From Macrostomum hystrix (Eukaryota; Animalia; Platyhelminthes): a stretch of 64,000 nucleotides of DNA. The position numbers and the translations under genes were made by a program. Below, one piece after another: positions 10,009-43,365 of the stretch. The DNA is taken from contig CATNEN010000007.1 of the NCBI GenBank assembly GCA_950097015.1, forward strand, positions 1-64,000, written 5' to 3'. The notes beneath the pieces were generated by a model, which was not told the origin of the DNA, did not search any database, and saw nothing but the letters and a program-made list of their open reading frames with translations. Position 1 is the first letter of the stretch. Every line of letters starts with the position of its first letter.

Positions 10009-10440
10009 GAGTTAAATAATTAAAACCACAATGATTCACTGTTTGCGCAGTTGAAAAGCTACAAATTAATTTTCTAAAACAAAATTTCTCCTGTATTTTT
10101 GTCACTTTTTTATTTCATACAAAATGTACTTTTATTGGGTAAATATAGTTTGTGATTAGAACTTGTGACACTTCATTGTTATAAAAACGTGTTAAACAGC
10201 AAAAAGAATATTTTACTCGAAGTACCTGAAGTTTTTTACTGAACAAAATTGTTTAAGAATTTAACTGTCCTGATTTTTTTCTGAGAAGCAGATAGCAATA
10301 ATAACTCTGAAAGTAAATTGTACAGTAACTCAAGAATGGGATGCTCATTCTCTATAGTGAAAGTCACAGCCATAACCTGGGCCTAAGAACATTGTCAACA
10401 CCGAGGCCCAGATTTAGTTTATTCAGGAATCAAAGCATTG

Positions 10441-12203
10441 TCACTGGCCAATCCTCGTCACCTGCAGGAAGGTGAGTTCCTTCCTACAAACGTGCAGCCT
10501 GAACTGATCCTGCCTCTCTCTGATTCCGTCCAGACTTGTCAGACTGACCCGGATTCGAGCTCCGGCCCGCAGGTGCCGTATGCCGATCGTCATGCAGGTC
10601 AAGGGCCGGCTGACGCTCAGTGACCTGGCAGCCGAACTGGGATCACTGTCGTCGATGTGCAAGGCGCACTCGATGGTGCGGACTGAGCTGGCATCCACCA
10701 GCTGGGCCACGAGCTGCGTGGTCATGTGGTACAGGCCGGGGCGCAGTACAACCAGTGTGGAGCCGCCATCGGCCAGAGAGAAGGCACCGTCTGCGACGTT
10801 TCCACTGCTGCTGTCTGGAGTCCATGGCGCCACAGTCACTGAGCTCTTGCCAGCTGGAATGCAATTTTAAGGGGCTAAATGACTGCAGACCTATTGCGGT
10901 ACCAACTACCAACTGCAGTACCAACTACAGAACCAACTACAGAACCAACTACAGAACCAACTACAGAACCAACTACAGAACCAACTACAGAACCAACTAC
11001 TGCACCAACTACAGGACCAACTACAGAACCAACTACAGAACCAACTACAGTACCAACTACAGTACCAACTATGGTACCAAAAGCAGTGCCAACTACAGTA
11101 CCAACAACAGAACTAACTATGGTACCAACTACAGTACCAACTAAACCACCAACTACAGTACCAACTAAACCACCAACTACAGGACCAACTACAGTACCAA
11201 CAATTACTAACAGTTGTCTAATCGGTTACCTCTGCTCAGAATGTCCATGTCGCGGCACAGATTCCCATAGAACTTGCTTTGACACGATTCCAAGCGTTCG
11301 TAAGCGATCCGCAGAGTGATCTAGAATGCGTATTGAATTCGTTTGTCAGGATTCAGAAGGCCCATGTTGGTCAGTGATTGAATACCCAGCCAGGATTTTG
11401 TAGGGCTTACATTATCAGCCAAGACGCTGTTCGCATTGTCCATGGTCCTGGCCACCTGCAGGTAGGTGCTCTCCGGCTTGAACACTTGGATCCTGAACTG
11501 GCTCTTGTCCAGAGAGTCGTCAAGGTTGCGCAACCGGACACCAATCACGTCACCACCCCGCAGCCTCAGAATGCTGACCGCCAGGCAGCTGATTGGCCGG
11601 CCGGCGCTCACGGACCGACCAGAGAAGGCCGCCCGGCCGTTGATGGTGATGTCGCACACGACGTCCTTGGCTGCGCCGGCTTCCTCCAGCAGCAGCTGGG
11701 TGGTGAGCTGAGTTTTTATTTTATACAAACCAGGCCGCTGCACCTGCACCTGTGCCGCCTGATTGACCACCGCGAAGCTGCCAGCCTTGGCGGTGCCATC
11801 GACAATGGCCCAAGGTCCGAGCTCGACATTTTTCTGACCCTCTGAAGTTTAAAAGTCAGTCAGTCAACAATTCTGGTTAATTCTCTAAATAACAAACCAT
11901 TGGCATTTAAAAAATTTAGCTAATTTTCTCACTTTTGGTCAGCACGATGGAGTTGCGGCAGAGGCTGCCGTTAAAAACTCCCTGGCACGATGTCAGTTGT
12001 TGGGAGTCGACTTTCATAAAAATCTGGAAGTTAACATTAAGAAATAGTTATTTGAGCCGTACAGTTAGGCGCGAAGGTTCACAAAGGTGCGCGAAATTTA
12101 CCGTGTCGGGAAGTTGGGACGAGTTCCCGAAAGGCGCGCCTTGTGCCAGCGGTATTCCTCCTAGGAGCAGCAGAATAGCGACCACGGCTCCGAAGCTGAG
12201 CAT
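10441..12203 (-). CDS. TNF-like gene T2: secreted protein with two tandem TNF-homology domains (375 aa)
   Basis: Exons 12203-12102, 12023-11933, 11841-11411, 11320-11230, 10853-10441. All introns are GT-AG, phases 0/1/0/1, 1128 nt open. Signal peptide MLSFGAVVAILLLLGGIPLAQG. Domain motifs GPW...VQRPGLYKIKTQL...STYLQV and APW...VLRPGLYHMTTQL...TFLQV. TATAAA at ~12328-12333. Confidence 0.85.
10899..11203. repeat. 12-bp minisatellite (ACCAACTACAGA)n in T2 intron 4
   Basis: Direct inspection; lies between donor 11229 and acceptor 10854. Confidence 0.9.
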
Positions 12204-12949
12204 TCTCAGATGAGAAGTAGATTGATTCTTGGCGCAACTGGGCATACTGGCGAAATTTGATCAGGAAGCCTCGGTGAGTTTCTCTTAGAAGACTCGTTAA
12301 CTTTGTGGCAGAGAAATTTGCGCCTTATTTATAGGCAATTTTTTGTCAGGTCATCCGCGCACTTCAGTCTAAATTGTCACTTCCGTTGGTTTCGCCACAG
12401 GCTGTAAATAGCATCAGTTTAGCCTCGCCCTCGACCAAGCCCTTCTAAAAATAGCGCCCGCCAACTCGAAAAGCCGCCAATTTTTTCATTCGCCATTCCG
12501 CACCGCCATTGTGTGATTCTTCCTGAAAATAACCTCTCGCCTTTGTTGACCATTGCCAAAAATACCCATTGTGCACCTGCCACAGTGGATGAAATTAGAA
12601 ACCTGTTGTTTGTGTTATCAATAAACTTCGACCTAGAGATTAATCAGAACTTGAATAGTTTTTTAATTTCTCAATTTGGCAACATTTCTTAGAAACAAAG
12701 TTCACCATCGCATACATTTTTAGACGAAAACATATTTTAAAGAAATTTCCTAAATACAATGGCCTTTTAAAACGCCCTAAATTCTATGATTTTAGTATTT
12801 TAAAAATAAAATCACGAAAAAAGTACCGGTTTATTAAACAAATATTATGATTCTCAATAATTGTTGCCCATCTGACGGACAGGCCCAAAATATTCCTTTA
12901 ATTAATTCCCACTCCACTTAAATAATTTGCGCCATTTAGCAAGACAAAC

Positions 12950-18026: not shown

Positions 18027-21000
18027 TGTTGCATATGCTGCATGCTATGCTGATTTATTTATAGACTTATTCTCGTCTAAAAGTAGTCTATGTGCCATTG
18101 AGGCAAAATGCTACTGTACATCTTGTTTGCTAGAAGCTTCAATGCCCCTTAAGGGTAAAGAAATATAACAGCGAGCTTTAGGCTCATGCCAACTTGGAGC
18201 TGCTCTAATAACGCACTTCTGCAATTCACAAACCCAAGTGCCTTCGTGATCTTCAAACGTAACATGGCGACGAGGAAAAACCACTGGATTCACTGAAGAA
18301 GCTGTGTACTGACTACCTTACGTTCGCAGGAGTGATGACTCAGCCGTTGGATTTTCGACTTGGAGAACTGCCTCTTTCTTATCCCGAGATCGAGCAGTAT
18401 TTCAAAAGACTGCAGTTTTACCTGGTGGCTTCAGGGAAGCAAGCTCACTCCAAAGCAGTACTTCTAGCGACATGCGGAGACGCAGCATTCACACTGATAG
18501 AAGAGCTTGCAAAGCCAAAAGACATCACGAAGGAGGAAGTAACGTTCGATGATATCCAGAATTCGCTAACCGCACATTTTAAGCCCAAAACATTGCTTCA
18601 CTATGAGAGACACGTGCTTCACTCCATGGTGCAAAAGGAGGGTGAATCGATTGCTACCTACATCGAATGTCTGAAGCGCCAAGCCAACAAATGCAGATTC
18701 GGTGATCTCCGAGACGAACTAATTCTGTCGCAGTACACATTTGGCTTGCGGAATCAAGTGCTAAAGCAAAAGCTTCTTTCAAGAGAGGATGTCACTTTGG
18801 AAGGCGCGATACAAGAAGGTTTGCTGTCTGAGTCGATTAGGATGGCAACAAGCAAGCCGGATACAATCGCGGCGGTGCAGAAGAAGAGTCATTCCGGATG
18901 GGTAAGACCAGAAAAGACGCCTGCCCACAAGCAGCAGCACAGTTGGGACAACCGCAAAGGACCGACAAAGCCTCGTGAAACTGGTCACTGCCACACATGT
19001 GGAAAAGCAGGACACGTCAGGTCAAAGTGCCGATTTAGGGATGCGCAGTGCCGAAAGTGTGGGAAGGTTGGACACCTGGCAGCAGTTTGTCGCTCCAAGA
19101 CCGTTAATACTCTGCAGAACGTGTGCCGATCAGAGGATTCTAGCCATGGGCATGTAGGAGCAATCTACGCGACAACCGACATCGGAGATCGTCATTCAAC
19201 GGATCAGTGGTTTGTTACATGCAAGATTGGAGACGCGAGTGCTAAGATGTTGGTAGATACAGGCAGTCAAGTTACCATCATACCCAAGCACGTTGCTGAC
19301 GGTTCCAATCTGAAATTCAAACCAGTTACTAAAACGCTTAAGTCGTACGGCGGATTCCAGCCAGAAATATACTCAGTCATTCAGGATGCAACGATTACTC
19401 TGTCCGATGGAAGATCTGCCACGGGAAAAGTGTATGTAGGCAGCGATTTATTGGCTATACTGGGAATGGATTTCCTATCGCGCCTGCACATACTACACAT
19501 CGACGGAAGTATTTCAGAAGATCTTCTTTGCATGCCAGTGGTGCGTGATGCAAATTCGAGATTTCTCGCGAGTTTCCGCCTCCGCTCAGATGCTAGAACG
19601 GACGGCATGCGATATCCAGCCAGATCTTTGCCCTTTTCTATGAAGTCCATGGTTGAGACCGAGCTCAAGCGACTGCTAAATGCAGGCATTATATATCCAG
19701 TGGAAGACCCAACCGTTTCTGCGCCAATTGTTCCAGTTTTAAAGCAGCAAGGCTCAGCGAGACCAATACGTCTATGTGGCGACTACTCAGTCACGCTTAA
19801 TCGCATAATCGATGCCGATCGCTACAAGCTTCCAAAGCTAGAAGAAATCCTTTCTAAAATTCCTAATGCCAAGTACTATTCAGTCCTGGATTTAGAAGAC
19901 GCGTTTCTTCAAGTTGCGCTTTCTCCTGAGAGCCAGAAACTTACCTGCATATCTACGCACCTGGGCTACTTCGCTTTCAAAAATCTTCAGTTTGGAATTT
20001 CCGCAGCACCATTAATCTTCCAAGAAGTCATGGATGATGTGCTCAGAAACGTAGAATGCACTGCTTCGTATCAAGACGATATAATAATTGGAACTCCCGG
20101 AGACCGACAACAACACATCCTGGTGCTAAACAAGGTAAAGCAGCGTTTGGCTGACAATGGGTTCAAGATTAACGCCCGCAAGTCACAGGAATGCCTACAA
20201 AGCGTCAAGTTTCTCGGGTTCATTATCCACAACGGCAAGCTCGAGCCTGATCCAGCGAGAATAGAAGCATGGGAAAATATGCCAGATCCCACTGATAAAG
20301 ACCGATTAAAAAGCGCCTTGTGTACTCTTCGACACTACGGTCTGTTCTGCAAGAATTTTTCTATCATCGCTCGACCGTTGTATTCATTATTGAAGAAAGG
20401 ACAGCACTGGTTCTGGAACAAAGAGCATTCACAGGCCTTCAAGAGATTGAAGCAAAGTATCCGACAAGGAGCGATAACTGCTTACGACTCGTCAAAGCGT
20501 CTGTTTCTGACTTGTGATGCGTCAAAGGATGGATTGGGGTTCGTGCTCTCTCATGACAGAGAGCAGAGACAGATTGTTTGGCTCTGAAGCAGAGTGCTCA
20601 CACCCGCAGAGGGTAATTATGCAAATATCGAACGAGAGGCGCTGGCTATCGTCGAAGGAGTTAAGTATTTCCACCAGTTTCTCGCCGGAAGAAGATTTAC
20701 AATTCTATCAGACCACAGACCGCTTCAGTTCATTTTCGATCACCATAAATCTTCTGAACGTGTTTCCGCCAGGCTTCAACGCTGGTCGCTCATTCTACGA
20801 GCGTATGACTACAAGATCGAATATTCCAAAGGCGATTCGATGTACGCCGCTGATACTCTGTCGCGACTTCCAAATGGCAATTGCATAACGAAGGAATCCG
20901 TCAACCTACTGTCAATAAATGCCCTGGACACTTTTGCGAATTCCGAAGATCTACTGCGTCGAATTGCTAAGACGAATGACTGCCATCTGCAGACACTGAA

Positions 21001-22380
21001 GCATTACATTCAGGGTGGATGGCCGGAGTACTTACCGAAAGTCATGTTGCCTTACTCAAAAGGGAAGCTTGAGTATACTATTCAGAACGGTGTTGTGTTT
21101 AAAGGATTGCGGATCGTTCCACCCAGTGAATTACGAACGGAAATTTTACACCTGCTCCATGAAAATCATCCCGGAGTTGTGCGCATGATTCGTTTGGCAC
21201 GACAGTATTTCTGGTGGCCAGGAATCGACACGCAGATAAACTGCTTCGTTCGAAGGTGTGCACAGTGTCAGCTTCACGCAAGAAAGCGAACTAACTCCAA
21301 TTTATCCTCTTGGGAAGATGCGCAGACGTTCTTCGAGAGAGTACACGCAGACGTCGCGATATTCAAAGGACACCGATTCCTAGTGCTAGTAGACGCATTC
21401 TCGAAGTGGGCGGATGTTCGGCATATCGATTCAATGAAATCGCAATCTGTAATTCGGGCATTTCGACAAACATTTAATTACATGGGTCTCCCACAAACCT
21501 TGGTGACAGACAACGGTACAAATTTCACGTCCGCCGAATTCGCCACGTTCCTAAAGGAGAACTTCGTTCAGCACCTTCTGACTCCTCCAGGTCACCATCA
21601 GTCGAATGGGCAAGTGGAGCGGATAATAGAAGAGTTTAAATTTCATCTAAAGAAGTCAAACGCTACTTCTGACGCGGCTGAACTAGAGCGAATTGCAATC
21701 GCGTTCTGTCTGTTTCACAATACTACACCGCAATGCAATGGTTCTATTCCTGCTGGTTTGGTGTTTCTTCAACTGCCAAGAACTCGCTTGTCAAGAGTGT
21801 GCACTGACTGGATTCAACCTCGACTACAAGCCGAACCAGTCTTCATTCGTGTGGAACACAAGGAAGAGAGGGTTCCGTCAATGATTACTACTTCCGTCGG
21901 AACCAATACCTTTCGTGACGACAAGGGTCGGCTGGTACATCAATCGGATATTATACCAAAGCTTCATGACGTGACTGACGGATCTGATTCCGACCAGAAT
22001 CAAAAACCCGTCTCGGAGGAAAAAACTACCGACGTCACGGCTAATCAAGCTACGGAAACGGCGCAAAAACTGAGGCGGAGTTCTCGCCAACGTCGACCCC
22101 CTGATCGTTTGGGTTACTGACGTTTTTCAGCATCGGTGGGGGTGTTGCATATGCTGCATGCTATGCTGATTTATTTATAGACTTATTCTCGTCTAAAAGT
22201 AGTCTATGTGCCATTGAGGCAAAATGCTACTGTACATCTTGTTTGCTAGAAGCTTCAATGCCCCTTAAGGGTAAAGAAATATAACAGCGAGCTTTAGGCT
22301 CATGCCAACTTGGAGCTGCTCTAATAACGCTCTTCTGCAATTCACAAACCCAAGTGCCTTCGTGATCTTCAAACGTAACA
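18027..22380 (+). mobile_element. Full-length Ty3/Gypsy LTR retrotransposon (Mag-like architecture)
   Basis: 238-bp TG...CA LTRs at 18027-18264 and 22143-22380, with one mismatch seen. 5-bp TSD GATTG, PBS TGGCGACGAGG at 18265, purine-rich GGTGGGGGG tract before the 3' LTR. Confidence 0.97.
18332..22120 (+). pseudogene. gag-pol: gag-pol polyprotein interrupted by a single in-frame TGA at 20585-20587
   Basis: Two CCHC knuckles, protease LVDTGS, RT YQDD, RNase H (LTCDAS...IVWL*SRVLTPAE.NY..IERE), integrase HHCC and D-D-E. ORFs 18332-20587 and 20594-22120 are in the same frame. Confidence 0.93.
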
Positions 22381-23612: not shown

Positions 23613-23921
23613 GTACACGCGTGCGTAATCTATTTTTAGTTTTTTAGCATTCGGAATTTCCCTGGTACTTCCAATGGCCTTCTTGACTTCCTTCTAGTGA
23701 CTCAATTAAGAAGTACGTTTTTTAACACAAGGAAGTTTGCTTTGGTACAAGCAATGAGTCATGCTGATACTATTGCGAAAAAAATTCAAACAATTCTTTT
23801 TTGTAATAACAGCCTAGCATTCTTATCTACCCTAAAAGTGGACTAAGGATTGTAAAGAGTGGTAAAGCCTTCGTGATTTCCTCTAAACAATTGTGCTTTA
23901 ATGATCTCTGTATAGTATTTT

Positions 23922-24697
23922 AGAATGCCTGAAGAGTGTCTCAGCATCCCTGAAGAGTGTCTCAGTATCACTGAAGAGTGTCTCAGTATCACTGAAGAGT
24001 GTCTCAGTATCCCTGAAGAGTGTCTTAGCATCACTGAAGAGTGTCTTAGCATCACTGAAGAGTGTCTTAGTATCCCTGAAGAGTGTCTTAGTATCACTGA
24101 AGAGTGTCTCAGTATCCCTTAAGAGTGTCTCAGTATCCCTGAAGAGTGTCTTAGTATCCCTGAAGAGTGTCTAAGTATCCCTGAAGAGTGTCTCAGTATC
24201 CCTGAAGAGTGTCTCAGTATCCTTGAAGAGTGTCTCAGTATCCCTGAAGAGTGTCTTAGTATCACTGAAGAGTGTCTCAGTATCCCTGAAGAGTGTCTTA
24301 GTATCCCTGAAGAGTGTCTTAGCATCACTGAAGAGTGTCTTAGCATCACTGAAGAGTGTCTCAGTATCCCTGAAGAGTGTCTTAGCATCACTGAAGAGTG
24401 TCTTAGTATCCCTGAAGAGTGTCTCAGTATCACTGAAGAGTGTCTCAGTATCCCTGAAGAGTGTCTCAGTATCCCTGAAGAGTGTCTCAGCATCCCTGAA
24501 GAGTGTCTTAGCATCCCTGAAGAGTGTCTCAGTATCCCTGAAGAGTGTCTCAGTATCCCTGAAGAGTGTCTCAGTATCCCTGAAGAGTGTCTAAGTATCA
24601 CTGAAGACTGTCTCAGTATCCCTGAACAGTGTCTCAGCATCCCTGAAGAGTGTCTCAGCATCCCTGAAGAGTGTCTCAGCACTCCTGAAGAGTGTCA
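23922..24697. repeat. Second array of the same 21-bp satellite
   Basis: Same unit and orientation as 12950-17524; degenerate units trail to ~24830. Confidence 0.97.
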
Positions 24698-27870: not shown

Positions 27871-29979
27871 ATGAATGGACCGTACGAGAATCTGATCCAG
27901 TCGGGCCTCGATAACCCAGCATGTTTGGATCACGCGGAATATGGGCCAATTGAGAAGCGATTTGTCAAACGACTCGACGATGCTTATCGAGTTAAAAGTT
28001 TGACTGCCAAATTTTCTGTCATTTGCACCGTGATCCTGCTGGTGGCAGCGGCCTCTACAACTGGCATGTCCGGCTGGGCCTATTATTCGATGCGGCAGAG
28101 AGCTGACAATAGTCCATGCGTGAGCACCGATATACTAAATATGAATTTTAAATAAAATACTAAATTCACTTGCACTGATTTTCATTGCAGACCTACACAG
28201 CCTTTGTCTTGGACACTGATGCCATACAGTCATGCGGACTGCCTGCTATGCACCACCCACCGTGTCAGATTAACTCCACCGGGGCATTGTTGACCTCTGA
28301 GATGTGTAAGTTGTGGATTTGCTTCTAAATCTGCTTTGTAAAGCTAGATTATCAATCCATTCTGTCCTCCGAGGCTAGATTAACAAACCATTGTATTCTC
28401 CGAGGCTAGATTAGCAATCCATTCCATCCTCCGAGGCTAGATTAGCAATCCATTCTGTCCTCCGAGGCTAGATTAACAAACCATTGTATTCTCCGAGGCT
28501 AGATTAGCAATCTTTTCTATCCTCCGAGGCTAGATTAGCAATCTTTTCTATCCTCCGACGCTAGATTAGCAATCTATTCTATCCTCCGACGCTAGATTAG
28601 CAATCTATTCTATCCTCCGAGGCTAGATTAGCAATCTATTCTATCCTCCGACGCTAGATTAGCAATCTATTCTATCCTCCGAGGCTAGATTAGCAATCTT
28701 TTCTATCCTCCGAGGCTAGATTAGCAATCTTTTCTATCCTCCGAGGCTAGATTAGCAATCTTTTCTATCCTCCGAGGCTAGATTAGCAATCTTTTCTATC
28801 CTCCGAGGCTAGATTAGCAATCTTTTCTATCCTCCGAGGCTAGATTAGCAATCCATTGTATTCTCCGAGGAAAGATTAGCAATCCATTGTATTCTCCGAG
28901 GAAAGATTAGCAATCCATTGTTTTCTCCGAGGCTAGATTAGCAATCGATGATAATCTCCTAAGCTAGACTATGTATTATATTAGTCATGCACCTATGACT
29001 CAAACGGCACAAACTTAATGAAGAAAAGAACAGTTTGATGCGAAAGTTTATTTTAAGCAACACAAGGTAATTACTGCCCAACACTTAGAAAAAGGATGTG
29101 CAATTATACTGAATCTGTACGCGTGCTTCACTCATTGAAGCTAACTAGGATGTCCCGCCTGTAACTTCTAAAAATGTTTGCTAAATTTATTACTATATTC
29201 AAATTTCCCTACTATCAGTAGAGTAGGTAGTAGGTTCTTGCAATTTTTAATTGAACGATGTGGAGCAGCCATGTTTATTTGCACAGTCAACAACGCAGTG
29301 GGGCCCTGGAAATCTGGAGAGCTGGACGGTGTTGTCGACGGCGGCTACAGCGGCAGCGTCTGCGGCTTCGAGCTGGAGAGGTCTAGGACCCACCTGGTTG
29401 TGCGCCAGCCTGGCTTGTACCAGCTGACTGGCCAGGTGAGCTAGAGGGCGAGGTAGAACGATTCGGCCAATAAATCATAATTGATTAATCAATCCATGAT
29501 CCATCGATTAAACAAACAAAGAATTACTAAGTTATTCAAAAGATAAATCGATCTATAAATAGAATAACACCGATCTATAAATAGAATAACCGATCTATAA
29601 ATAGAATAATCGATCAATAAATAGAGTAATCGATCGAATAATAAAATATTCGATCGATAAACTGCCGTATCGATCGACAAAGAGACTAAATCGATCGATT
29701 AAAAATCGATCAATGAAAGAGTATATAAAACGACGAATTACTTGTTGCTAGGTAACCTTCACTGACGATGGCCCGGCCCACCTGGAGTGGCAGGTGAATC
29801 ACGCCGAGTGGATCGCCGTGAAGCGCGGCCGCGGCGATCGCGCCGGGCCAACTCAGGCCCGCCTGGAGGCCGTGCGCCGGCTGGCCGCCGGAGACAAGCT
29901 GTCGCTGCACCTGGACCGGGGCGAGAGGCGCCTAGCAACCCCTGCCCCCACTACCCACATCGGGCTTGTCCGCCTCTGA
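27871..29979 (+). CDS. TNF-like gene T5: type II membrane TNF-homology protein (246 aa)
   Basis: Exons 27871-28119, 28191-28305, 29287-29435, 29752-29979. GT-AG introns, phases 0/1/0, 741 nt open. TM FSVICTVILLVAAA. The spliced product gives the signature LVVRQPGLYQLTGQ|VTF, then LAAGDKLSL and THIGLVRL. Confidence 0.88.
28344..28945. repeat. 31-bp minisatellite (TCCGAGGCTAGATTAGCAATCTTTTCTATCC)n in T5 intron 2
   Basis: Direct inspection, ~19 units. Confidence 0.95.
29540..29710. repeat. Degenerate ~20-22-bp ATCGAT-rich repeat in T5 intron 3
   Basis: Recurrent CGATCTATAAATAGAATAA units. Confidence 0.75.
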
Positions 29980-30810: not shown

Positions 30811-33800
30811 TCAGGCGTAGCACAGTCTGGCAGCCAGCCTGGTGTTCTCAAGCTCCGCTGGTCCCAGAGGCCCGCCGCCCGCATTGTTAGGCCTGCCCAG
30901 CAGCAGTTCGCCGACTGGGAATCGCCGCAGGGGCCGCCGCCGTTCGTTTCGAGCGGCAGCCGGGTAGCCCAGGTGCAAGAACCGGTGAACGCCCAGCGTA
31001 TTGGAGGTGAGCCACTTCTCAGCCAGCTGACTGTAGCCGGATTGGCTCAGCTTGCGACAGGCAGCGAGCTTCAGCGGATTGTTTTCGCGGCTCTCTGACG
31101 CTCGGATGTGAAAATAATAGTTCTGATGCAACCGGTGGGATGCCGCTCGGCTTCCTGCCGGATTCAGGAGTCGCTCTGCGATGTGGTAATTTTGCACATA
31201 ACGAATTTCTAATTCGCGCACTTTAAGTCCAGCCAGTGGATATTTTTAGATCTGAGTGAGCGACTCTCAATGTACGTAGGTAATGTACTTTGGCTATTTT
31301 TAGATCTGAGTGAGCGACTCTCAATGTACGTAGGTAATGTACGCTGACTATTTTCAAATATGAGAGTGCAAATGGTAGTGTACATAGATTATGTTCGTTT
31401 GTTAATTTTAGATCTCATAGTCTTAACCTCATTGTACATAGGTAATGTACGCTGGCTATTTTTAGATCAGAGAGTGCAACTCGAAGTAAAGTTAGATTAT
31501 GTTCGTTGGCTTCGTTTAGATCTAGGAGTACAAATCGCAATTTACCATAGGTAATGAACGCATACATATTCTTTGTTTTAATGAGTTGTAAACAGACTGT
31601 ACAAATATGCGCTTATAGAACATTTGTGCGTAAAGCGGTGCTTTATACTGTTAAGCTACACTCGTAATATTTTACATTATTTTATCTAGCAGTTGATGTA
31701 AGTTATTGCTGGGAAAAGTACATTTGTAAAGCTTTTTTTCTTTGAAGACACATGAGATGCATTCAAATGTTTGAACTTACCACAGACAGACTTCAATAAC
31801 GCTGATCTATCCAACAATGGTGAGAACACACTCGGACTCAACAGTCTCAGGCGCTGACTCAAGTTGGGCGTCACGGAGCGGTACTGCTGGTACTGCTGAG
31901 TCAGGTAGATGGGCCCCGTGGAGCTGATTATGTCTTCAACTGTAAGGCAGGATAATTAACACGCGATAAAATCCATTATCTGCGTGACTTGTACAGAAAG
32001 ATATGCTATTAGCAGCGATGACTCATCGCCAGTCGATGGCGTGGGGTGGGTGTCGACGAAATCGTGATAAGGCATCAACCAATTGGAGAAAAGTGAACTA
32101 TTTTTAGACTGCTAAGTGCTAATTCATACCGTTTTTCTTGCTAGGCAGGTTCTGTATAACTTGCTCCAGAAACGGATGCCTCTTCGTACAGCCGATGACA
32201 GAATTCATGACCGAGTACTCGATGCCGTGCAGAATTTGAGTCTGCTCCGGGCGTTCTTGATCGAAGAAGCAGGTCTCAGTGGCCACAAGGGAGTCTAGCG
32301 GTTGTATGCAGTGCACGTCCATGTCTATGTACACACCTGCCATGGACAAGGAAACAACGAATCAAAGAAGGACATTGACCATCAACTTCGCCGTGAAAGG
32401 TAGATATTACTTTTAATTAAGTGTTTACCAAATCTACTTTTTATTAAGATTTGTAATGATTTAAAAAAACTAAATTTATTATTCGCAGTAACTGACAGTA
32501 AGAGATAACCCCAGAGATAAGGAGAAGGCTGAAGGGTAAAAGGAATGAGGACGGGTCAGAGGGTAAGAGCTGAAAAGGAGGGGGTGAGGAAAGAGAGACG
32601 AACAGCTAGCCAATCAGAGGCGAGGGAGAGGAGAGAGGAGAAAGTACAATAAGAGGTCACGCGAGCGTGAACTAACACAGAGAGATCAAGGAAAAGTAAT
32701 AACAAGACTTAAAGCGCTACAAGACGCGTACATTTGAATGTACTTTAGTGTACATATTAACGCATCGAATGTTACATTGGAGTGTAAATTCGTGCAAAAA
32801 GTAACTGAAATGTACATCAAAATCACAATGAACATTTTAATGAATCAGCGCCATAACGCATGACTATTAAGAGTATTAAGAGTAAGGCACACACAGTTTT
32901 TCCGATGCAATTCTTTTGTTGTAGGAAAAATCAAAGAAAAATGTTGTGGGTGGTGCCACATGCTAACAAGGGCCTCTGTCTACTATACAAATCTACTGTG
33001 CAGCATGCAACACTTGCCACTGTAAATAAGGTAGAAATGCCCACAGAATATTTTATTGAATAATTCATGGAATGCTTCATTTCAGTACGCCTGCCCAATC
33101 GGGCCAGATGTGCAGCCGACAGCACAGCCGCAGCTACTGCGTGGCACATCTGAAGGCTGCGTACGGCTGTTCAGTCCATGGACTGGAAGGACGCCACACC
33201 CACCCTCAATTACACCCGCTGATGCTGGTACCCAATTAACAGCTGGGTGAATTAAAGCAATGTAGAATTAATTGTTTTGCTAAAAAGCATAAACCTTGAC
33301 AGTGGAATCAGGATTCGAACCCCCCGACCTACAATCCGTGAGTCTAAAGCTTCAGCCACTAGGCTACAACCTCCTTTGCCTGCATGAATCATTCACACAA
33401 TGGCTCATACAATGGCTCATACAATGGTTCATACAATGGCTCATACAATGGCTCATACAATGGCTCATACAATGGCTCATACAATGGCTCATACAATGGT
33501 TCATACAATGGCTCATACAATGGCTCATACAATGGTTCATACAATGGCTCATACAATGGCTCATACAATGGCTCATACAATGGCTCATACAATGGCTCAT
33601 ACAATGGCTCATACAATGGCTCATACAATGGCTCATACAATGGCTCATACAATGGCTCATACAATGGCTCATACAATGGTTCATACAATGGCTCATACAA
33701 TGGCTCATACAATGGCTCATACAATGGCTCATACAATGGCTCATACAATGGCTCATACAATGGTTCATACAATGGCTCATACAATGGCTCATACAATGGT

Positions 33801-34756
33801 TCATACAATGGCTCATACAATGGCTCATACAATGGCTCATACAATGGTTCATACAATGGCTCATACAATGGCTCATACAATGGCTCATACAATGGCTCAT
33901 ACAATGGCTCATACAATGGCTCATACAATGGTTCATACAATGGCTCATACAATGGCTCATACAATGGCTCATACAATGGCTCATACAATGGCTCATACAA
34001 TGGCTCATACAATGGTTCATACAATGGCTCATACAATGGCTCATACAATGGTTCATACAATGGCTCATACAATGGCTCATACAATGGCTCATACAATGGC
34101 TCATACAATGGCTCATACAATGGCTCATACAATGGCTCATACAATGGTTCATACAATGGCTCATACAATGGCTCATACAATGGCTCATACAATGGCTCAT
34201 ACAATGGCTCATACAATGGCTCATTGAACTCACCGCCGAAGTGGTGCAGTATGAAGTACCTCAGTGCGTCTGACCTCTGCAGAGCCTTCTTATAGCCGTC
34301 AAACATTGGCAGGAAGTCCGCATAGTTCGCTTCAACAAACTTCCTGGCCTCCGAGTCTGTCCACAGGACGTAGACAAAATCAGGATTTCGGCGAATGCAG
34401 GAGGCGATCGAGTGGCGATACAGCTCCGGCACGATGTCGGTGGCATAGATCTGGTGCAGCAGCAGGGGAATCCTGCCATCGCACTGGCCCGTCAGGTTCA
34501 ACCGCCCAGTGGAGGCTCGCCTAGCCGCGGCCAGCTGTCGTATCCTGGCGTCGACATCCGGGTCTCCGGTCAGCTCGAGCCAGACCGGCTCGTCCCAGGT
34601 GAAGTAGATCCAGCCGCGGCTGACCGCGACCGTTAGGAGAAGCAGCAGAAGAGCGAGCAGCAGCGGCGGAAACAGGGAGACTGCGCAGGTCGGCTGGCCG
34701 AAACCGGGGCCGCAGCAGCAGGCGCGACGATGGAGGCTGCGGCAGAGCAGCCGCAT
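30811..34756 (-). CDS. GT32-family DXD glycosyltransferase (SUR1/Och1/A4GALT-like), type II membrane, ~417 aa
   Basis: Exons 34756-34234, 32336-32130, 31939-31781, 31175-30811 (last acceptor less certain); 1254 nt open. Motifs IPLLLHQIY, YVLWTD, SDALRYFILHHFGG|VYIDMD, HPFL, STGPIYLT. Confidence 0.88.
31243..31550. repeat. Degenerate ~55-60-bp tandem duplications in glycosyltransferase intron 3
   Basis: TTTTTAGATCTGAGTGAGCGACTCTCAATGTACGTAGGTAATGTAC occurs twice exactly, then as diverged copies. Confidence 0.7.
33085..33370 (-). mobile_element. CORE-type SINE family B, second copy
   Basis: Aligns by eye to 4305-4550 (AATCGGGCCAGATGTGC...GGACGCCACACCCACCCTC...GCTGATGCTGGT...CAGCTGGGTGAA), with reversed B/A boxes. 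Confidence 0.75.
33396..34224. repeat. 12-bp minisatellite (ATACAATGGCTC)n in glycosyltransferase intron 1
   Basis: Direct inspection, ~69 units, starting ~10 nt inside the donor. Confidence 0.97.
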
Positions 34757-34817
34757 CCCGGATGGACTCCACTTGTGGCTGGCAGGGTCGGATATTGTTT
34801 TATTAAAACTGCAGCAG

Positions 34818-35010
34818 CGATTCTAGCTTCGATTCTAGCTTCGATTCTATCTTCGATTCTAGCTTCGATTCTTGCTTCGATTCTAGCTTCGATTCTAGCT
34901 TCGATTCTAGCTTCGATTCTAGCTTCGATTCTAGCTTCGATTCTAGCTTCGATTCTAGCTTCGATTCTTGCTTCGATTCTTGCATCGATTCTAGCTGCGA
35001 TTCTAGCTAC
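34818..35010. repeat. 12-bp repeat (TTCTAGCTTCGA)n upstream of the glycosyltransferase ATG
   Basis: Direct inspection. Confidence 0.92.
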
Positions 35011-35424
35011 GGTTCCCACTGCGATTCAAGGCAGAATGTAGGGCGGGTGAAGGAAAAAAATACTTCAATTTGTTCACCCGATAAGTACTCTGCAGGTTCA
35101 CAAGGCTGTTAAGTGCATACTTCGACGTAAATAGAAGTCCTCTCACGTGACTCATTTCATCCCATCCCAAATAGATAACACTGAGACACGCGCATTGCAC
35201 AGCTTTTAGTCGTCCCCACTAAGCCTGGTTTTCTCAAACTCTCCAAACCTCTTCTGCAAGCTTCTATTCGCTATTACGAGTTATTGAGACTAAATTTCGA
35301 TTGAGATCATTCCTACTTCATAGACTTCAAGGCCTCTCATTTTACGATTGTCTCACCTCTTTTTATTACGAAGATCAATAATTTTTCCCACTTCTTTTTC
35401 CTCTCTTATCTTTCCTAACTCTTC

Positions 35425-35865
35425 CTATCCCATCTCTCCCTCACTTTCCTCTCCCATCTCTCCCTCACTTTCCTCTCCCATCTCTCCCTCACTTTCCTCT
35501 CCCATCTCTCCCTCACTTTCCTCTCCCATCTCTCCCTAACTTTCCTCTCCCATCTCTTCCTCACTTTCCTCTCCCATCTTCCTCACTTTCCCCTCCCATC
35601 TCTCCCCCACTTTCCTCTCCCATCTTACTCACTTTCCTCTCCCATCTTCCTCACTTTCCTCTCCCATCTCTCCCTCACTTTCCTCTCCCATCTTCCTCAC
35701 TTTCCTCTCCCATCTCTTCCTCACTTTCCTCTCCCATCTCTTCCTCACTTTCCTCTCCCATCTTCCTCACTTTCCTCTCCCATCTTCCTCACTTTCTTCT
35801 CCCATCTCTCCCTCACTTTCCTCTCCCATCTCTCCCTCACTTTCCTCTCCCATCTCTCCCTCACC
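35425..35865. repeat. ~24-bp CT-rich minisatellite (CTCACTTTCCTCTCCCATCTCTCC)n
   Basis: Direct inspection. Confidence 0.92.
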
Positions 35866-36543
35866 TTCTTACCGATCTTGTCTGTCCTTCGCCAGTTGAT
35901 GATCCAACACTCGCGTGTCAATGGTGAAGCAAACAAGCTGAAACTTTGTCGCGCAGTTGCCGGGCAAAGTCTATTTTTCAGCGGTCCTCTCAGCGCCTCT
36001 GCACCGTTAATTCTATCCCCAGTTAGCCCCAGTGGCGCTTTAGAAACTGGTTTGCAGTGTTCGCCAGGACCCAAGCACTGTGATTGGCTAGCGTGGTGAA
36101 GGAGAGAGTTTTGACAAGAACTAAAAATTGGATTGGCAGCGGAGCAGGGGATAGGAGCAGCAATGACAGATGAGAGAGAAATATCCAACTGCATGTTAGA
36201 CCTGTGAATTTGTATTTCGCTGTCTCCGGGCGCTGTGTCTGAAAGCCAAATAAGGAGGGGCTAGGGAGTGTCTACCTGTCAGCAATCGTTCCCAAGCGAT
36301 GTCCTAAATATTTTATCATTTTATCCCCAATATTTTATTGCCGTTGTTTGCCTCGGAGCCAAAAGCACCCACCCCACTCCACGTCGGGCCATTGTGAGCA
36401 GCGGCAATGAAACGATGCTCATTATCATTTGAACAATTCATAGCTGCCAATTGATTATGCTATTCTGCATGCTTTCTGAATTTCGTTTTATGAACCTCTG
36501 GCTTTGATATTTCTTCCTCTGTATTAATATGCTTCTTATCCCA

Positions 36544-38481
36544 TAATCTACCTCTCTCATCGCTAATCTACCTCTCTCATCGTTAATCTACCTCTTTCAT
36601 CGTTAATCTACCTCTCTCATCGTTAATCTACCTCTCTCATCGTTAATCTACCTCTTTCATCGTTAATCTACCTCTCTCATCGTTAATCTACCTCTCTCAT
36701 CGCTAATCTACCTCTCTCATCGCTAATCTACCTCTCTCATCGCTAATCTACCTCTCTCATCGTTAATCTACCTCTCTCATCGTTAATCTACCTCTCTCAT
36801 CGCTAATCTACCTCTCTCATCGCTAATCTACCTCTCTCATCGTTAATCTACCTCTCTCATCGTTAATCTACCTCTCTCATCATTAATCTACCTTTCTCAT
36901 CGTTAATATACATTTCTCATCGTTAATCTACCTTTCTCATCGTTAATCTACCTCTCTCATCATTAATCTACCTTTCTCATCGTTAATCTACATTTCTCAT
37001 CGTTAATCTACCTCTCTCATCATTAATCTACCTTTCTCATCGTTAACCTACCGTTCTCATCGTTAATCTATCTTTCTCACCGTTATCTACCTCTCTTATC
37101 GTTAATCTACCCCTACTCTCATAGTTAATATACATTTCTCATCGTTAATCTTCTATTCTCATCGTTATTCTACCTTTCTCGTCGTTAACCTACCTTTCTC
37201 ATCGTTAATCTACCTCTCTCATCTTTAATCTACCTTTCTCGTCGTTAATCTAGTTTTCTCATAGTTAATCTTCCTTTCTCATCGTTATTCTACCTTTCTC
37301 GTCGTTAATCTACCTCTCTCATCTTTAATCTACCTTTCTCGTCGTTAATCTAGTTTTCTCATAGTTAATCTTCCTTTCTCATCGTTAATCTACCTCTCTC
37401 ATCGCTAATCTACCTCTCTCATCGTTAATCCACCTTTCTCATCGTTAATCTATCTTTCTCACCGTTATCTACCTCTCTTATCGTTAATCTACCCCTACTC
37501 TCATAGTTAATATACATTTCTCATCGTTAATCTTCTATTCTCATTGTTAATCTTCCTTTCTTTCTTATCGTTAATCTAGTTTTCTCATCGTTAATCTACC
37601 ACTCGCTTCGTTAATCCACCTTTCTCATCGTTAATCTACCACTCTCTTCTTTAATCCACCTTTCTCATCGTTAATCTTCTATTCTCATCGTTATTCTACC
37701 TTTCTCGTCGTTAACCTACCTTTCTCATCGTTAATCGACCTCTCTCATCTTTAATCTACCTTTCTCGTCGTTAATCTAGTTTTCTCATAGTTAATCTTCC
37801 TTTCTCATCGTTATTCTACCTTTCTCGTCGTTAATCTACCTCTCTCATCTTTAATCTACCTTTCTCGTCGTTAATCTAGTTTTCTCATAGTTAATCTTCC
37901 TTTCTCATCGTTAATCTACCTCTCTCATCGCTAATCTACCTCTCTCATCGTTAATCCACCTTTCTCATCGTTAATCTATCTTTCTCACCGTTATCTACCT
38001 CTCTTATCGTTAATCTACCCCTACTCTCATAGTTAATATACATTTCTCATCGTTAATCTTCTATTCTCATTGTTAATCTTCCTTTCTTTCTTATCGTTAA
38101 TCTAGTTTTCTCATCGTTAATCTACCACTCGCTTCGTTAATCCACCTTTCTCATCGTTAATCTACCACTCTCTTCTTTAATCCACCTTTCTCATCGTTAA
38201 TCTTCTATTCTCATCGTTATTCTACCTTTCTCGTCGTTAACCTACCTTTCTCATCGTTAATCGACCTCTCTCATCTTTAATCCACCTTTCTCATCGTTAA
38301 TCCACCTTTCTCATCGTTAATCTACCTTTCTCGTCGTTAATCCACCTTTCTCGTCGTTAATCTAGTTTTCTCATCGTTAATCTATCTTTCTCACCGTTAT
38401 CTACCTCTCTTATCGTTATTCTACCCCTACTCTCATAGTTAATCTACATTTCTCATCGTTAATCTAGTTTTCTCATCGTTA
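36544..38481. repeat. 20-bp minisatellite (ATCGTTAATCTACCTCTCTC)n with higher-order duplications
   Basis: Direct inspection; the right half is more diverged and contains duplicated variant blocks. Confidence 0.95.
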
Positions 38482-39383
38482 AGCGAAACATTTTCTCCCA
38501 GTCCATCGAACTACTTTCAACTTCCTCTACCCAAGCACCTATTCCACCTGTACAACAGATGAGTACAACTCTTCAATGCCAATTCAGAGCTCATACAGAT
38601 AGTATTAAGCAGCCAAAATGCAGCCATAGAGTGAAGGTGTGTCACAAGTAGCAGAACAATCCCCCTAAGGCAATCACCCCTTAACGAAGCAGTTTTTTTC
38701 TGCATGGGGAGAATCAAAGTCTAAAATAGCTGCTCCTGACATATTCTGAAAGCGCCAGACTTCCCAGTGCGTGACTGGCTGGCTATATTTAAACTGTTCC
38801 GCGTCAGAACCAGGCCTTGACGGAGGAGAAAGCAGAGTGGATTTTTTTGGAAGGCTTGGGGGAAATAGTGGCGGGGAAATGGGGACGGGAATGGACAAAA
38901 GTGCATTGATGCCATTCTCTGGATAAGAAAGCTCCAGTTACAAGCGAGGAGAAAATGAAAAAACCGTGGCCTCTGTTTTATTATTCTGAGCAACAATGCC
39001 GGCCAAGCGGGTGAAGCCAAAGCAGCCTCTAAACTATTTTATTTTTTTCGACGAAAAAAGACATGCCAATAAAAATTGCGCAAAGCTGAAAGACTAACAT
39101 AAAAATGTCCCGCTTTTAGCGCGATATTGCCCGAATGCAAGCTAGCAGGGATTGTATTGTGAGGCTGCTTCACACTCAGCAACCTAGGTAGACTAGTACT
39201 GCTCAATTTGGGCCCGGCAACTGGATACGGGCAGACAAGGCAGTGGGAAAATGAAGGGAGGAGGGGTAGAAGGAAAGGATGAGGATAGGGGAAGAAAGGA
39301 GGATGGTGCGATGGGAAAAATTGAGAATGGTGGGAGAGGAAAATAGGGGATGGGCGGGAAGGTAAGGATTGTGGATGGGGCTA

Positions 39384-40300
39384 AGATTTGAGGATGGGGA
39401 GAGTGGGAGATTTGAGAATGGGGAGAGTGGGAGATTTGAGGATGGGAGAGTGGGAGATTTGAGGATCGGGAGAGTGGGAGATTTGAGGATGGGGATAGTG
39501 GGAGATTTGAGGATGGGGATAGTGGGAGATTTGAGGATGGGGAGAGTGGGAGATTTGAGGATGAGGAGATTGGGAGATTTGAGGATGGGGAGAGTGGGAG
39601 ATTGGAGATAAGGGAGAGTGGGAGATTTGAGGATGGGGAGAGTGGGAGATTCGAGGATGGGGAGAGTGGGAGATTTGAGGATGGGGAAAGTGGGAGATTT
39701 GAGGATGGGAGAGTGGGAGATTTGAGGATGGGCAGAGTGGAGGATGGGGGAGAGTGGGAGATTTGAGGATGGGAGAGTGGGAGATTTGAGGATGGGGAGA
39801 GTGGGAGATTTGAAGATGGGGAGCGTGGGAGATTTGAGGATGGGGATAGTGGGAGATTTGAGGATGGGGATAGTGGGAGATTTGAGGATGGGGATAGTGG
39901 GAGATTTGAGGATGGGGAGAGTGGGAGATTTGAGGATGAGGAGATTGGGAGATTTGAGGATGGGGAGAGTGGGAGATTGGAGATAAGGGAGAGTGGGAGA
40001 TTTGAGGATGGGGAGAGTGGGAGATTCGAGGATGGGGAGAGTGGGAGATTTGAGGATGGGGAAAGTGGGAGATTTGAGGATGGGAGAGTGGGAGATTTGA
40101 GGATGGGCAGAGTGGAGGATGGGGGAGAGTGGGAGATTTGAGGATGGGAGAGTGGGAGATTTGAGGATGGGGAGAGTGGGAGATTTGAAGATGGGGAGCG
40201 TGGGAGATTTGAGGATGGGGAGAGTGGGAGATTTGAAAATGGGGAGCGTGGGAGATTTGAGCATCTGGATAGGGGAGAGGGGGAGAGTTGGGGATTTGAG
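39384..40300. repeat. 24-bp purine-rich minisatellite (GGGAGATTTGAGGATGGGGAGAGT)n with a 375-bp higher-order period
   Basis: Direct inspection; equivalent pseudo-ORF starts at 39369, 39744 and 40119. Confidence 0.95.
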
Positions 40301-40617
40301 GAGGAGAGAGAAATAGGCAGAGAAGAATAAGAGAAGAATTAAGAACATATGGAAGGCGATAGAAACTAGAAAACTATAAATTAGGAAGCTAATTGCGTAG
40401 ATACATTAAGAGAAGTGTAAACGATAGTGTAAAATATTCGTTGGTTATTAATAAAGGTACAGTAAACAATTAGAGATTGGAGATTAATTAAAATGAGTAA
40501 AGTGACATCCCAAATCAAGTACGCGACTGTTTAAGCTATTGTAACCGTGTTTTGTTGAGTCAATTGAGTGTTGCGTCATCCTTTAATTTATCCCCTAAGT
40601 GAATTGTGATCAAATGA

Positions 40618-43365
40618 TCAAAGGTGCGACTCCACGGTTGAAATAGTCGATATGACGCAGCAGTTACAGCCGCTGCCTATCTCGCCTATGGGCCGCTGTC
40701 CTGCCGATCTGTTGCGCGACGCAACAAAGTCCGCGTAGAGAGCGCGCACAATCTCGCCGGTTACGATGTGGCCGCAATTCAGTCGGATCATCCACACAAA
40801 GAACAGGCCGTCGATGCGGATAAAGTCGGATTCGAATTCGTTTAGGTTTTCCTGCGTGCGGTTTTATGAGTGAAGACATGTACACTGAGGCAAGGGTAGG
40901 AAGGGAAAGGAATCACTGGCTCCATTTACAAATGTACACTGAGGCAAGGGAAGGAAAGGAAAAGACTCGCTGGCTCCATGTACAAATGTACAAAGGGGCA
41001 AGGGAAGGAAAGGAAAATAATCGCTGGCTCCATGTACAAATGTACAAAGGGGCAAGGGAAGGAAAGGAAAAGACTCGCTGGCTCCATGTACAAATGTACA
41101 CTGAGGCAAGGGAAGGAAAGGAAAAGACTCGCTGGCTCCATGTACAAATGTACAAAGGGGCAAGGGAAGGAAAGGAAAAGACTCGCTGGCTCCATGTACA
41201 AATGTACAAAGGGGCAAGGGAAGGAAAGGAAAAGACTCGCTGGCTCCATGTACAAATGTACAAAGGGGCAAGGGAAGGAAAGGAAAAGACTCGCTGGCTC
41301 CATGTACAAATGTACACTGAGGCAAGGGAAGGAAAGGAAAATACTCGCTGGCTCCATGTACAAATGTACACTGAGGCAAGGGAAGGAAAGGAAAATAATC
41401 GCTGGCTCCATGTACAAATGTACACTAAGATCAGAGAAGAAAAGCAATCGGGGGTGGAGCCAGCCTGTGCCTACAAACCTCATTTTGTACGTTTTCCTGA
41501 TAGCCACAGCCCTTGATGAGTGACCGTAGGCACTCGCGCCGACTGCAGGCCAGTGTGAATCTGCGCAGCCAGGTCAGAACGCTGGTGGCACTGACCACGG
41601 TCGCAATCGTAAAGTAGAACCACAGGATGATGTAGACCTTCTCAGTGAAGATGTTCGAACTCATGGTGCAGTAGGTTGTGGCGCTATTAACACTCGTGAG
41701 ATCCTGATATGACAGGTGACACACTCCGAGCCTAGATAAACATAGATTATAGATGACTGTGGAGCATTGTAACAGACCAGCGGTTAGAAGAAAGGAGAGC
41801 TGGAAAGCAGCAGAACTGAGGATGTCGGGAACTGGGAATAAGGAGAGGGAGGAGTCGAGAAAAAAATGGGTAAAATAAAAGAATGGAATTTTAAAAGAAT
41901 GGAAGAAGGGAAAGAATTAAAGATGGGAGAGGGGAAGAATCGATAATGGGGAGAGGGGAAGAATTGATGATGTGGAGAGGGGAAGAATTGATGATGGGGA
42001 GAGGGGAAGAATTGATGATGGGGAGAGGGGAAGAATTGATGATGGGACGAGGGGAAGAATTAGGGAATAAGAAGGATAGGGTAGAAGAGTGGAATGGGAA
42101 AGGGGAGTGCAGTATAACAGTCGGTGCATCTGTCTCACCTGGGCAGCACCATGGTAACTTCCCAGTCGAGTCCCGTGGTGATGTTTCTCAACAGGTCAGC
42201 TCCAAAGGACAGCGAGTCGAAGCCGAGAAACTTTCTCATGAGCTCCAGCTGCAGCACCAGTACAGTCAAGCCGACTAGCTTTGTTGCCAGGTACATGACG
42301 AAGGTGTAGTTACCGAAGCGCTTGCTAACTGGGCACCATGGCAACCGCCGGTGCAGTGCCGTCGCCCAGTCCACCAGTTTGCCGCGCCGGTATTCGCGCG
42401 TAGCTAACAGCAGGTCCTTGAGGCAGCTGGTCAGCTCGCCGACTCTCTCAGCCCGCTTGCCCGGCGGCAGAAGCGATGCCTCTCTAGCCGAAGCGGCGAT
42501 GAAGGCCAGGTGAGAGGCCGGCCGGCTGAAGCAGAGCAAGTCGAACAGGGCCTTCGGTAGGTAGGAGAGTAGAGCTTGGATGCCAAGCAGCAGGGGCACC
42601 CACAGGTAGTAGCCTGCGGTGTTCATTTAAAACAGCGTGGTCGCTTCAGTTCTCAACGATTCTCAATTTATATCGACAACCTGTCCATCTCACCTGTTCA
42701 TTTCTGCTGTACTCTCAGTCTATCACACATTCGCTCTAACTATCCCTCATTTCACTCGTTATCCTAATTTATCCCATTATCCTCATCAGCTCCTTATCCT
42801 CAAATCTTCTCCATATCCCTCGTTTCACTCCTTATCCTCATTTCTCTCCTTATCCACCATGACTCTCCTTATCCCCCATTTCTCTTCTTATCCCCATTTA
42901 TCTCCTTATCCCCATTTCTCTCCTTATCCCCATTTCTCTTGATCCTCAATTTCTCTCCTTATCCCCATTTCTCTCCTTATCCCCATTTCTCTCCTTATCC
43001 CCATTTCTCTTAATCTTCAATTTCTCCTCACAATCCCACTCACGAATGACAATGTGGTTCTTTCTGAGCCATTGTTCATTCACATAGGGCAGTTCGTCGG
43101 TCATGCGGAGCGGGTAGACGCCGGTCACCCAGCAGTAGCTCTCGATCATCTGAGCGTCCATCATGGTCAGTGGCGTGAACGGCTTGTGCAGCAGCATGCA
43201 GGATATGGGCTTGGTGAAGTACTCCTTGGCGCCGATGACCAGACTGCTGACCAGCAGAACAATGCCGCTTAGAAGGAATGTGACCCGATCGCCAAAGTCC
43301 AGCAAAGCGGCTGGTGCCAGCAGGCCGGAGCTGCGAACATAGTCGAAGAATTTGAAGATCGTCAT
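40618..43365 (-). CDS. inx: Innexin (gap-junction/hemichannel protein), 427 aa
   Basis: Exons 43365-43044, 42613-42139, 41731-41479, 40851-40618; 1284 nt open. Motifs DFGDR, KPISC, ESYCW, IR|YYLWVP, LPR|LGVC...YC...NIFTEKVY, FIRIDGLFFVWMI. Confidence 0.93.
40878..41428. repeat. 54-bp minisatellite in innexin intron 3, ~10 units
   Basis: Unit GTACAAATGTACACTGAGGCAAGGGAAGGAAAGGAAAAGACTCGCTGGCTCCAT. Confidence 0.95.
41935..42065. repeat. 24-bp repeat (ATGGGGAGAGGGGAAGAATTGATG)n in innexin intron 2
   Basis: Direct inspection, ~5 units. Confidence 0.85.
42860..43030. repeat. 18-bp repeat (TCTCCTTATCCCCATTTC)n in innexin intron 1
   Basis: Direct inspection. Confidence 0.85.

Follow-up and report, generated by a model that had tools for sequence, protein, structure and literature searches.

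A flatworm gene encoding two tandem TNF-homology-like domains on one spliced transcript, within a cluster of divergent TNF-like paralogs

RESULTS AND DISCUSSION

Structure and transcription of a two-domain gene

The window analyzed here is a 64,000-nucleotide stretch of DNA from Macrostomum hystrix (contig CATNEN010000007.1, positions 1 to 64,000 of the forward strand), and all coordinates given below refer to it. Read from the sequence, a compact five-exon gene (hereafter T2) lies on the minus strand between 12333 and 10215, and a single continuous open frame runs across all five of its exons. The predicted chain has 389 codons when counted from the first AUG (12245), or 375 when counted from the AUG used in an earlier, sequence-only reading of this DNA (12203). 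All four introns are bounded by GT..AG and are 78, 91, 90, and 376 nt long. Exon 1 ends in phase 0 at 12102, and exons 2 and 4 share both their length (91 nt) and their phases (0 to 1). The sequence-only reading had described two modules, each composed of a 91-nt exon and a large exon, joined by a linker of about 13 residues. On re-reading, the coordinates, sizes, and phases of these modules all agreed, and the linker measured 11–13 residues from the last strand of domain 1 to exon 4. The features of the gene are as follows:

12326..12333, minus strand: TATA-like box TATAAATA, recognized from the sequence; the transcript contigs begin about 45 nt downstream of it (at 12282 and 12284)
12102..12284, minus strand: exon 1, comprising a short 5' UTR, the AUG at 12245, the AUG at 12203, and the hydrophobic segment MLSFGAVVAILLLLGGIPLA, then QG followed by AP
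11933..12023, minus strand: exon 2, 91 nt, the start of domain 1, with a putative A strand and a C-x8-C loop
11411..11841, minus strand: exon 3, 431 nt, the body of TNF-homology-like domain 1 plus the linker of 11–13 residues TMDNANSVLADN
11321..11410, minus strand: intron 3, 90 nt, GT..AG, open in frame as far as the acceptor TAG
11230..11320, minus strand: exon 4, 91 nt, phase 0 to 1, where domain 2 begins; paralogous to exon 2
11229-10854, minus strand: intron 4, 376 nt, mostly minisatellite
10907..11201, no strand assigned: 12-nt minisatellite, 24.6 copies, occupying most of intron 4
10441..10853, minus strand: coding part of exon 5, the body of TNF-homology-like domain 2, with the stop codon TGA at 10443-10441
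10215..10440, minus strand: 3' UTR, to the extent seen in the transcript contigs

To this predicted structure we could add transcript evidence from three public sequencing runs (X1, X2, and X3, all from one study) that contain the T2 stretch, and whose contigs were aligned to positions 10100-12500 (2,401 letters). The runs carry no RNA label and comprise approximately 50 million letters each; they were treated as transcript-derived because four introns are cleanly removed, intron sequence is absent from the assembled contigs, and the runs are small. Runs X1 and X2 yielded one contig each (1,432 nt and 1,435 nt, respectively), spanning 12282/12284 to 10215/10216, and both contigs contain exactly the four predicted joints (12102/12023, 11933/11841, 11411/11320, and 11230/10853). 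Two of the four joints were also present in run X3. Compared with the assembly, the contigs show one synonymous change (12144), two single-base indels in the 3' UTR, and nothing else. T2 is expressed, and both of its domains are carried on one spliced mRNA. This bears out the sequence-only reading, which had placed the two domains in one transcript across the 11411/11320 joint, present in the contigs of both X1 and X2. The outcome that had been named as contrary to it, namely transcripts ending at a read-through stop at 11321, failed to appear, as the assembled transcripts splice past 11321.

Two other interpretations of the locus were dropped on the same grounds. The region does not represent two adjacent genes, since the contigs join both parts and domain 2 lacks a separate first exon. 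Likewise, the stop at 11321 does not end the protein encoded by the assembled transcripts, as intron 3 is spliced out in X1 and X2. Retention of this intron would, as read from the sequence, yield a protein with domain 1 only; no such form was found among the assembled contigs of X1 and X2, which are blind to rare isoforms.

The two 3' UTR indels lie at 10232 and 10302, both at runs of A by eye, and reflect either polymorphism or homopolymer error in the assembly. This bears on whether the frameshifts in a neighboring paralog (T1, described below) are real.

A cluster of TNF-like paralogs

T2 is clustered with three complete type II membrane paralogs and with T1, and all of these align over the C-terminal domain. 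The paralogs are as follows:

5097-3876, minus strand: T1, the closest single-domain paralog of T2, with the same small-exon plus large-exon structure
23618-22698 and 26041-25244, minus strand: two intronless open reading frames (ORFs; about 304 and 265 aa) for type II membrane proteins that combine a Cys loop with a C-terminal domain that is TNF-like but divergent
27871-29979, plus strand: a fifth TNF-like gene, type II, with three exons, the anchor in exon 1 and the domain split over the two others

T1 appears frameshifted twice in the assembly, in exon 1 (the ATG frame versus the membrane-anchor frame) and in its small exon (96 nt instead of 91); it may be a pseudogene or be affected by assembly indels. 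The two intronless ORFs had no Pfam match and, by exact look-up, were absent from the protein collection. Given the intron-bearing paralogs alongside, they could be retrocopies. The fifth gene carries the motif PGLYQLTGQV and a terminal THIGLVRL.

Several other features were observed in this part of the window. Between the TNF-like genes, two plus-strand ORFs of 751 and 508 aa (18332-22120) read as a Ty3/Gypsy-type gag-pol, with zinc knuckle, protease, reverse transcriptase, and integrase-like stretches recognized by eye. A minisatellite at 23843-24682 is open in frame and yields LRHSSG(I/M) repeats. Farther along, a single-exon glycosyltransferase ORF on the minus strand (33392-34756; Pfam Gly_transf_sug, E 1e-8) has its best match in Macrostomum lignano (A0A1I8FDK5, 78% identity over a quarter of the query). 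Over positions 34001-42000, GC skew is very pronounced, at −0.29 to −0.48 at 34–38 kb and +0.30 to +0.38 at 38–42 kb, and this switch of sign suggests strand-biased repeat arrays in opposite orientation.

Domain identity and fold

The two domains of T2 are homologous to one another along both of their exons: the large exons (3 and 5) are 34% identical over 135 aa (E 5e-25), and the small exons (2 and 4) are 37% identical over 30 aa (E 1e-8). The cysteine pairs, the open frame, and the hydrophobic pattern are retained in both. There is no membrane helix between the domains, and the linker TMDNANSVLADN is polar, with residues 136-143 of the exon 3 model below pLDDT 50.

Family assignment was based on Pfam scans and AlphaFold (AF2) models of the T2 large exons taken singly, rather than of the joined spliced protein. 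In the Pfam scan, the large exon of domain 2 matched TNF (PF00229) with 13.6 bits (E 0.065), below the gathering cut-off of 23, and the large exon of domain 1 had no PF00229 match. BclA_C was matched about as well as TNF, by domain 1 (E 0.017) and by T1 (E 0.0012), the latter matching both TNF (16.6 bits) and BclA_C. No C1q (PF00386) match was found in the T2 large exons at E values up to 10, nor were collagen-like Gly-X-Y repeats present in exons 1 and 2, and T2 has no collagen or coiled-coil stalk. When profiles of the window domains were compared with all solved chains in the PDB, TNF ligands made up 22 of 24 and 23 of 25 weak matches, the best of which was EDA-A1 (E 0.008–0.013).

The AF2 models are all-beta for both domains (pLDDT 79 for domain 1 and 65 for domain 2). 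Foldseek comparison with the PDB returned exclusively TNF ligands among the first 50 matches of domain 2 and the first 44 of domain 1 (E down to 2.5e-6), with C1q proteins appearing for domain 1 only from rank 45. The closest solved folds for both large-exon models were EDA-A1, 4-1BBL, BAFF, and TRAIL. VIA-align, which is independent of Foldseek, gave Z scores of 12.8 for EDA-A1 and 12.2–12.6 for BAFF, TRAIL, and APRIL; BclA (Z 12.2) and the C1q domain of Caprin-2 (Z 11.9) differed from these TNF ligands by less than 1 Z unit. An Atlas shape search ranked EDA-like and arthropod TNF clusters first. The language-model look-alikes were C1q and BclA_C clusters. As modeled, the fold of the T2 domains is the C1q/TNF jelly roll, and the fold alone places T2 in the C1q/TNF superfamily. 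The narrower assignment to the TNF ligands comes from the sum of the sequence matches, the Foldseek ranking, and the gene context. On the models, T2 probably belongs, as a very divergent member, to the family of TNF ligands, for which the sequence evidence is weak and the structure evidence stronger.

When 1.84 billion representative proteins were searched exhaustively with a profile, no T2 orthologue was detected at E < 1e-10, which indicates that the T2 subfamily is very divergent. The search produced five matches, none better than E 4e-9. The best of these, P0001, is a metagenomic hypothetical protein of 451 aa with two nearly identical BclA_C/C1q-like domains; its N-terminal region is unrelated to T2, and it represents another natural two-domain chain of this fold. 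The remaining four are bacterial repeat proteins, whose matches are probably driven by composition. Word-based homolog searches with domain 2 alone and with an alignment of five sequences gave no match.

Origin of the two domains

A maximum-likelihood tree of five window domains (T2 domains 1 and 2, T1, and the two single-exon paralogs) separated the T2 domains and T1 from the single-exon paralogs with support of 100/99. Domain 1 has the longest branch in this tree, and domain 2 is slightly nearer to T1 (38%) than to domain 1 (35%). The sequence comparisons indicate that the duplication behind the two domains is old. The sequence-only reading had ascribed it to internal duplication of an exon pair. 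The repeated, homologous module is as that reading described, but the tree leaves the order among domain 1, domain 2, and T1 open, and a fusion of neighboring tandem genes would fit T2 as well as an internal duplication would. We infer long-standing selection on the two-domain chain, since both domains keep their frame, cysteine pairs, and hydrophobic pattern, and domain 2 lacks a separate first exon.

Signal peptide or membrane anchor

TNF ligands have a type II membrane topology or, as in lymphotoxin-alpha, a signal peptide, and the N-terminal segment of T2 may be either. An in-frame ATG at 12245-12243 lies 14 codons upstream of the ATG at 12203, inside the transcript and with no stop between them. 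It is the first AUG of the T2 mRNA; a stop lies farther upstream, and there is no other ATG toward the likely start site. Judged by these features, the N-terminus adopted in the sequence-only reading is probably too short. From the first AUG, T2 would begin with a 14-residue basic tail, MPSCAKNQSTSHLR, continuing into MLSFGAVVAILLLLGGIPLAQG and then AP.

The hydrophobic stretch consists of 20 uncharged residues (KD19 2.36), and AQG followed by AP comes after it. In length and hydrophobicity, the stretch almost matches the anchors in the cluster's three complete type II paralogs, which are 21–27 residues long with KD19 values of 2.03–2.53. However, the T2 segment contains G-G-x-P-x-A-x-G, a good signal-peptidase site, and by eye the paralog anchors are without such a motif. 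Cleavage of the segment after AQG is on these grounds slightly favored over a short-tailed type II anchor. The proposal that T2 carries a cleavable signal peptide instead of an anchor is therefore one of two readings: the AQG-AP motif speaks for it, whereas the basic tail added by the upstream AUG and the anchor-like character of the stretch would suit an anchor as well.

Proposed assembly and alternatives

The signaling form of a TNF ligand is a trimer built from separate chains, and how strongly it signals is set by its stoichiometry and clustering. For a chain with two domains, we give slightly better than even chances to a reading in which T2 is a TNF-family ligand whose linked domains are neighbors in a trimer-like assembly, with the third place filled in trans. 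The N-terminal hydrophobic segment would route the chain into the secretory pathway, and domains 1 and 2 would, by analogy, form adjacent protomers of one trimer-like assembly. Such a side-by-side arrangement is possible because the linker length (11–13 residues) falls within the range of engineered single-chain TNF. The third place could be filled by a single-domain paralog, giving a lymphotoxin-like 2+1 arrangement, although this idea is weakened by T1, the nearest such paralog, which looks frameshifted in this assembly. Alternatively, the third place could be taken by a domain of a second T2 chain, which would link two trimers, three chains providing six domains. The likely target would be the flatworm NGFR-like TNF receptor (PMC7519573).

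A more specific version of this proposal, which we regard as possible but doubtful, is that T2 is a natural "two-thirds single-chain" TNF ligand in which the linkage fixes the geometry, either as an obligate 2+1 heterotrimer with a membrane-anchored paralog or as three chains bridging two trimers. If true, the 2+1 heterotrimer would amount to a lymphotoxin-like solution encoded by linkage, and in the bridged form a soluble ligand would reach the NGFR-like receptor already clustered.

Other arrangements of the same chain can be weighed against the side-by-side assembly. Three parallel T2 chains could form a domain-1 homotrimer and a domain-2 homotrimer connected by three linkers, and would then display two different receptor-binding surfaces. 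The domains are only 34% identical, so that each could own an interface, and a linker of 11–13 residues could span two trimers. Both termini of a TNF-homology domain are located at one end of the fold, and this also counts toward the arrangement. It is nonetheless unlikely in our view, since the short linker and the single N-terminal tether would crowd a base-to-base stack, and since the engineered precedents with short linkers (PMC5529482, PDB 4zch) place linked domains in one trimer. Less probable again is that the two-domain mRNA is a functionless by-product of fusion and that the effective product is a single-domain protein, released by intron 3 retention or by proteolysis of the linker; among the readings considered here, this is the one to which we assign least weight. 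Intron 3 is open in frame to its acceptor TAG, so that retention would give a domain-1 protein, and a rare isoform would be invisible in contigs. Against this, the spliced form alone was assembled in two runs, and domain 2, with no first exon to itself, has kept its frame, cysteine pairs, and hydrophobic pattern at 34% identity. That domain 2 is intact after such divergence speaks for selection having long acted on it within the T2 chain.

It could also be asked whether T2 is a receptor ligand at all. A secreted C1q/BclA-like recognition protein, lectin-like or acting as a decoy, would be consistent with the BclA_C scores in Pfam, which rival the TNF scores (E 0.017 for domain 1, E 0.0012 for T1), with the C1q and BclA_C clusters among the language-model look-alikes, and with the VIA Z scores for BclA (12.2) and the Caprin-2 C1q domain (11.9). 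The best library match is likewise a two-domain BclA_C/C1q-like metagenomic protein, and the N-terminus of T2 resembles a signal peptide. The evidence on the other side covers sequence, structure, and gene context: Pfam C1q is not matched, a collagen or coiled-coil stalk is missing, the profile matches among solved chains are nearly all TNF ligands, and C1q enters the Foldseek ranking only at position 45. Moreover, the paralogs are type II membrane proteins, like TNF ligands, and motifs are held in common with published TNF ligands of Macrostomum. A recognition protein is accordingly improbable, a little more so than the stacked homotrimers, and we retain the TNF ligand with neighboring linked domains as the working model.

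With its two-domain chain seen at the mRNA level, T2 offers a simple system for asking how an incomplete single-chain ligand assembles. The gain is modest, in that the architecture is not new in principle and the assembly and function outlined here for T2 are proposals.

Comparison with known TNF systems

T2 shares the jelly-roll fold of EDA-A1, 4-1BBL, BAFF/APRIL, TRAIL, and insect Eiger (Foldseek E ~1e-6, VIA Z 11–12.8). As in canonical TNF ligands, there is a GLY motif in strand C and a hydrophobic last strand; a cysteine pair is placed like the EDA disulfide, and the neighboring paralogs are type II membrane proteins, as canonical ligands are. T2 differs from these ligands in having two domains per chain rather than one, in its low identity to them (12%–24%), in its possibly cleavable signal peptide, and in an extra C-x8-C loop supplied by a separate 91-nt exon.

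Lymphotoxin alpha1-beta2, whose secreted subunit is retained by a paralog anchored in the membrane, provides a working model for a fixed 2+1 mixed trimer. Its structure (PDB 4mxw) was among the fold matches of T2; however, it consists of three separate chains, whereas T2 links two domains covalently and its partner is hypothetical. In the engineered single-chain ligands scTNF, scTRAIL, and single-chain APRIL-BAFF-BAFF (PDB 4zch), domains follow head to tail with short flexible linkers and linked domains are neighbors in one trimer. Engineered single-chain TNF trimers are stable with short peptide linkers (PMC5529482). These ligands are man-made and have three domains that complete the trimer, whereas T2 has two, with a stop after domain 2.

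In a survey of flatworm TNF ligands (Bertevello et al. 2020, PMC7519573), each of the 17 proteins had a single TNF domain, a signal peptide was predicted for none of them (Table S4), and several had very short N-terminal tails. The published flatworm set thus consists of single-domain proteins only. Free-living flatworms have several TNF ligands and, as a rule, one NGFR-like receptor per species; a single NGFR-like TNFR was reported for each flatworm species, with one species-specific duplication (PMC7519573). None of the published flatworm ligands was reached by the T2 profile at E 0.001 in the library search. T2 nevertheless has, like the published Macrostomum ligands, a short N-terminal tail before the hydrophobic segment, and by eye the two have several motifs in common, namely the A strand plus Cys loop, LGP(W/L), PG(I/L)Y, and a C-terminus of the STFLQIARL type (in narrower form LGPW, PGLY, and STFLQ(V/I)AR).

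Natural genes with several TNF domains have been described from other invertebrates in a preprint (10.1101/2024.07.27.603686). These include Hydra A0A8B7E873 and relatives (9, 4, and 9 TNF domains), the ostracod Darwinula (A0A7R9A6L1, 3 domains), and the oyster Crassostrea virginica (A0A8B8AD19, 2 domains), with one case of two domains fused outside the membrane and no second membrane helix. The multi-domain examples come from Cnidaria, Mollusca, and Arthropoda, and no flatworm case was found in the main text of the preprint. Together with the engineered single-chain trimers (PMC5529482, PDB 4zch), these genes show that the "new signalling logic" attributed to T2 in the sequence-only reading was overstated. 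They resemble T2 in carrying several TNF-homology domains per open frame, in one example fused outside the membrane. They differ from it in belonging to other phyla with an independent origin, in being known from predicted proteomes and AlphaFold models, whereas for T2 a spliced mRNA was seen, and in the age of the duplicates, which are recent in those genes and old in T2 (34% identical). Hence, a two-domain architecture is rare among TNF ligands and already known in other invertebrates; T2 adds transcript support and extends to flatworms the short list of multi-domain TNF ligand genes, which otherwise come from predicted proteomes.
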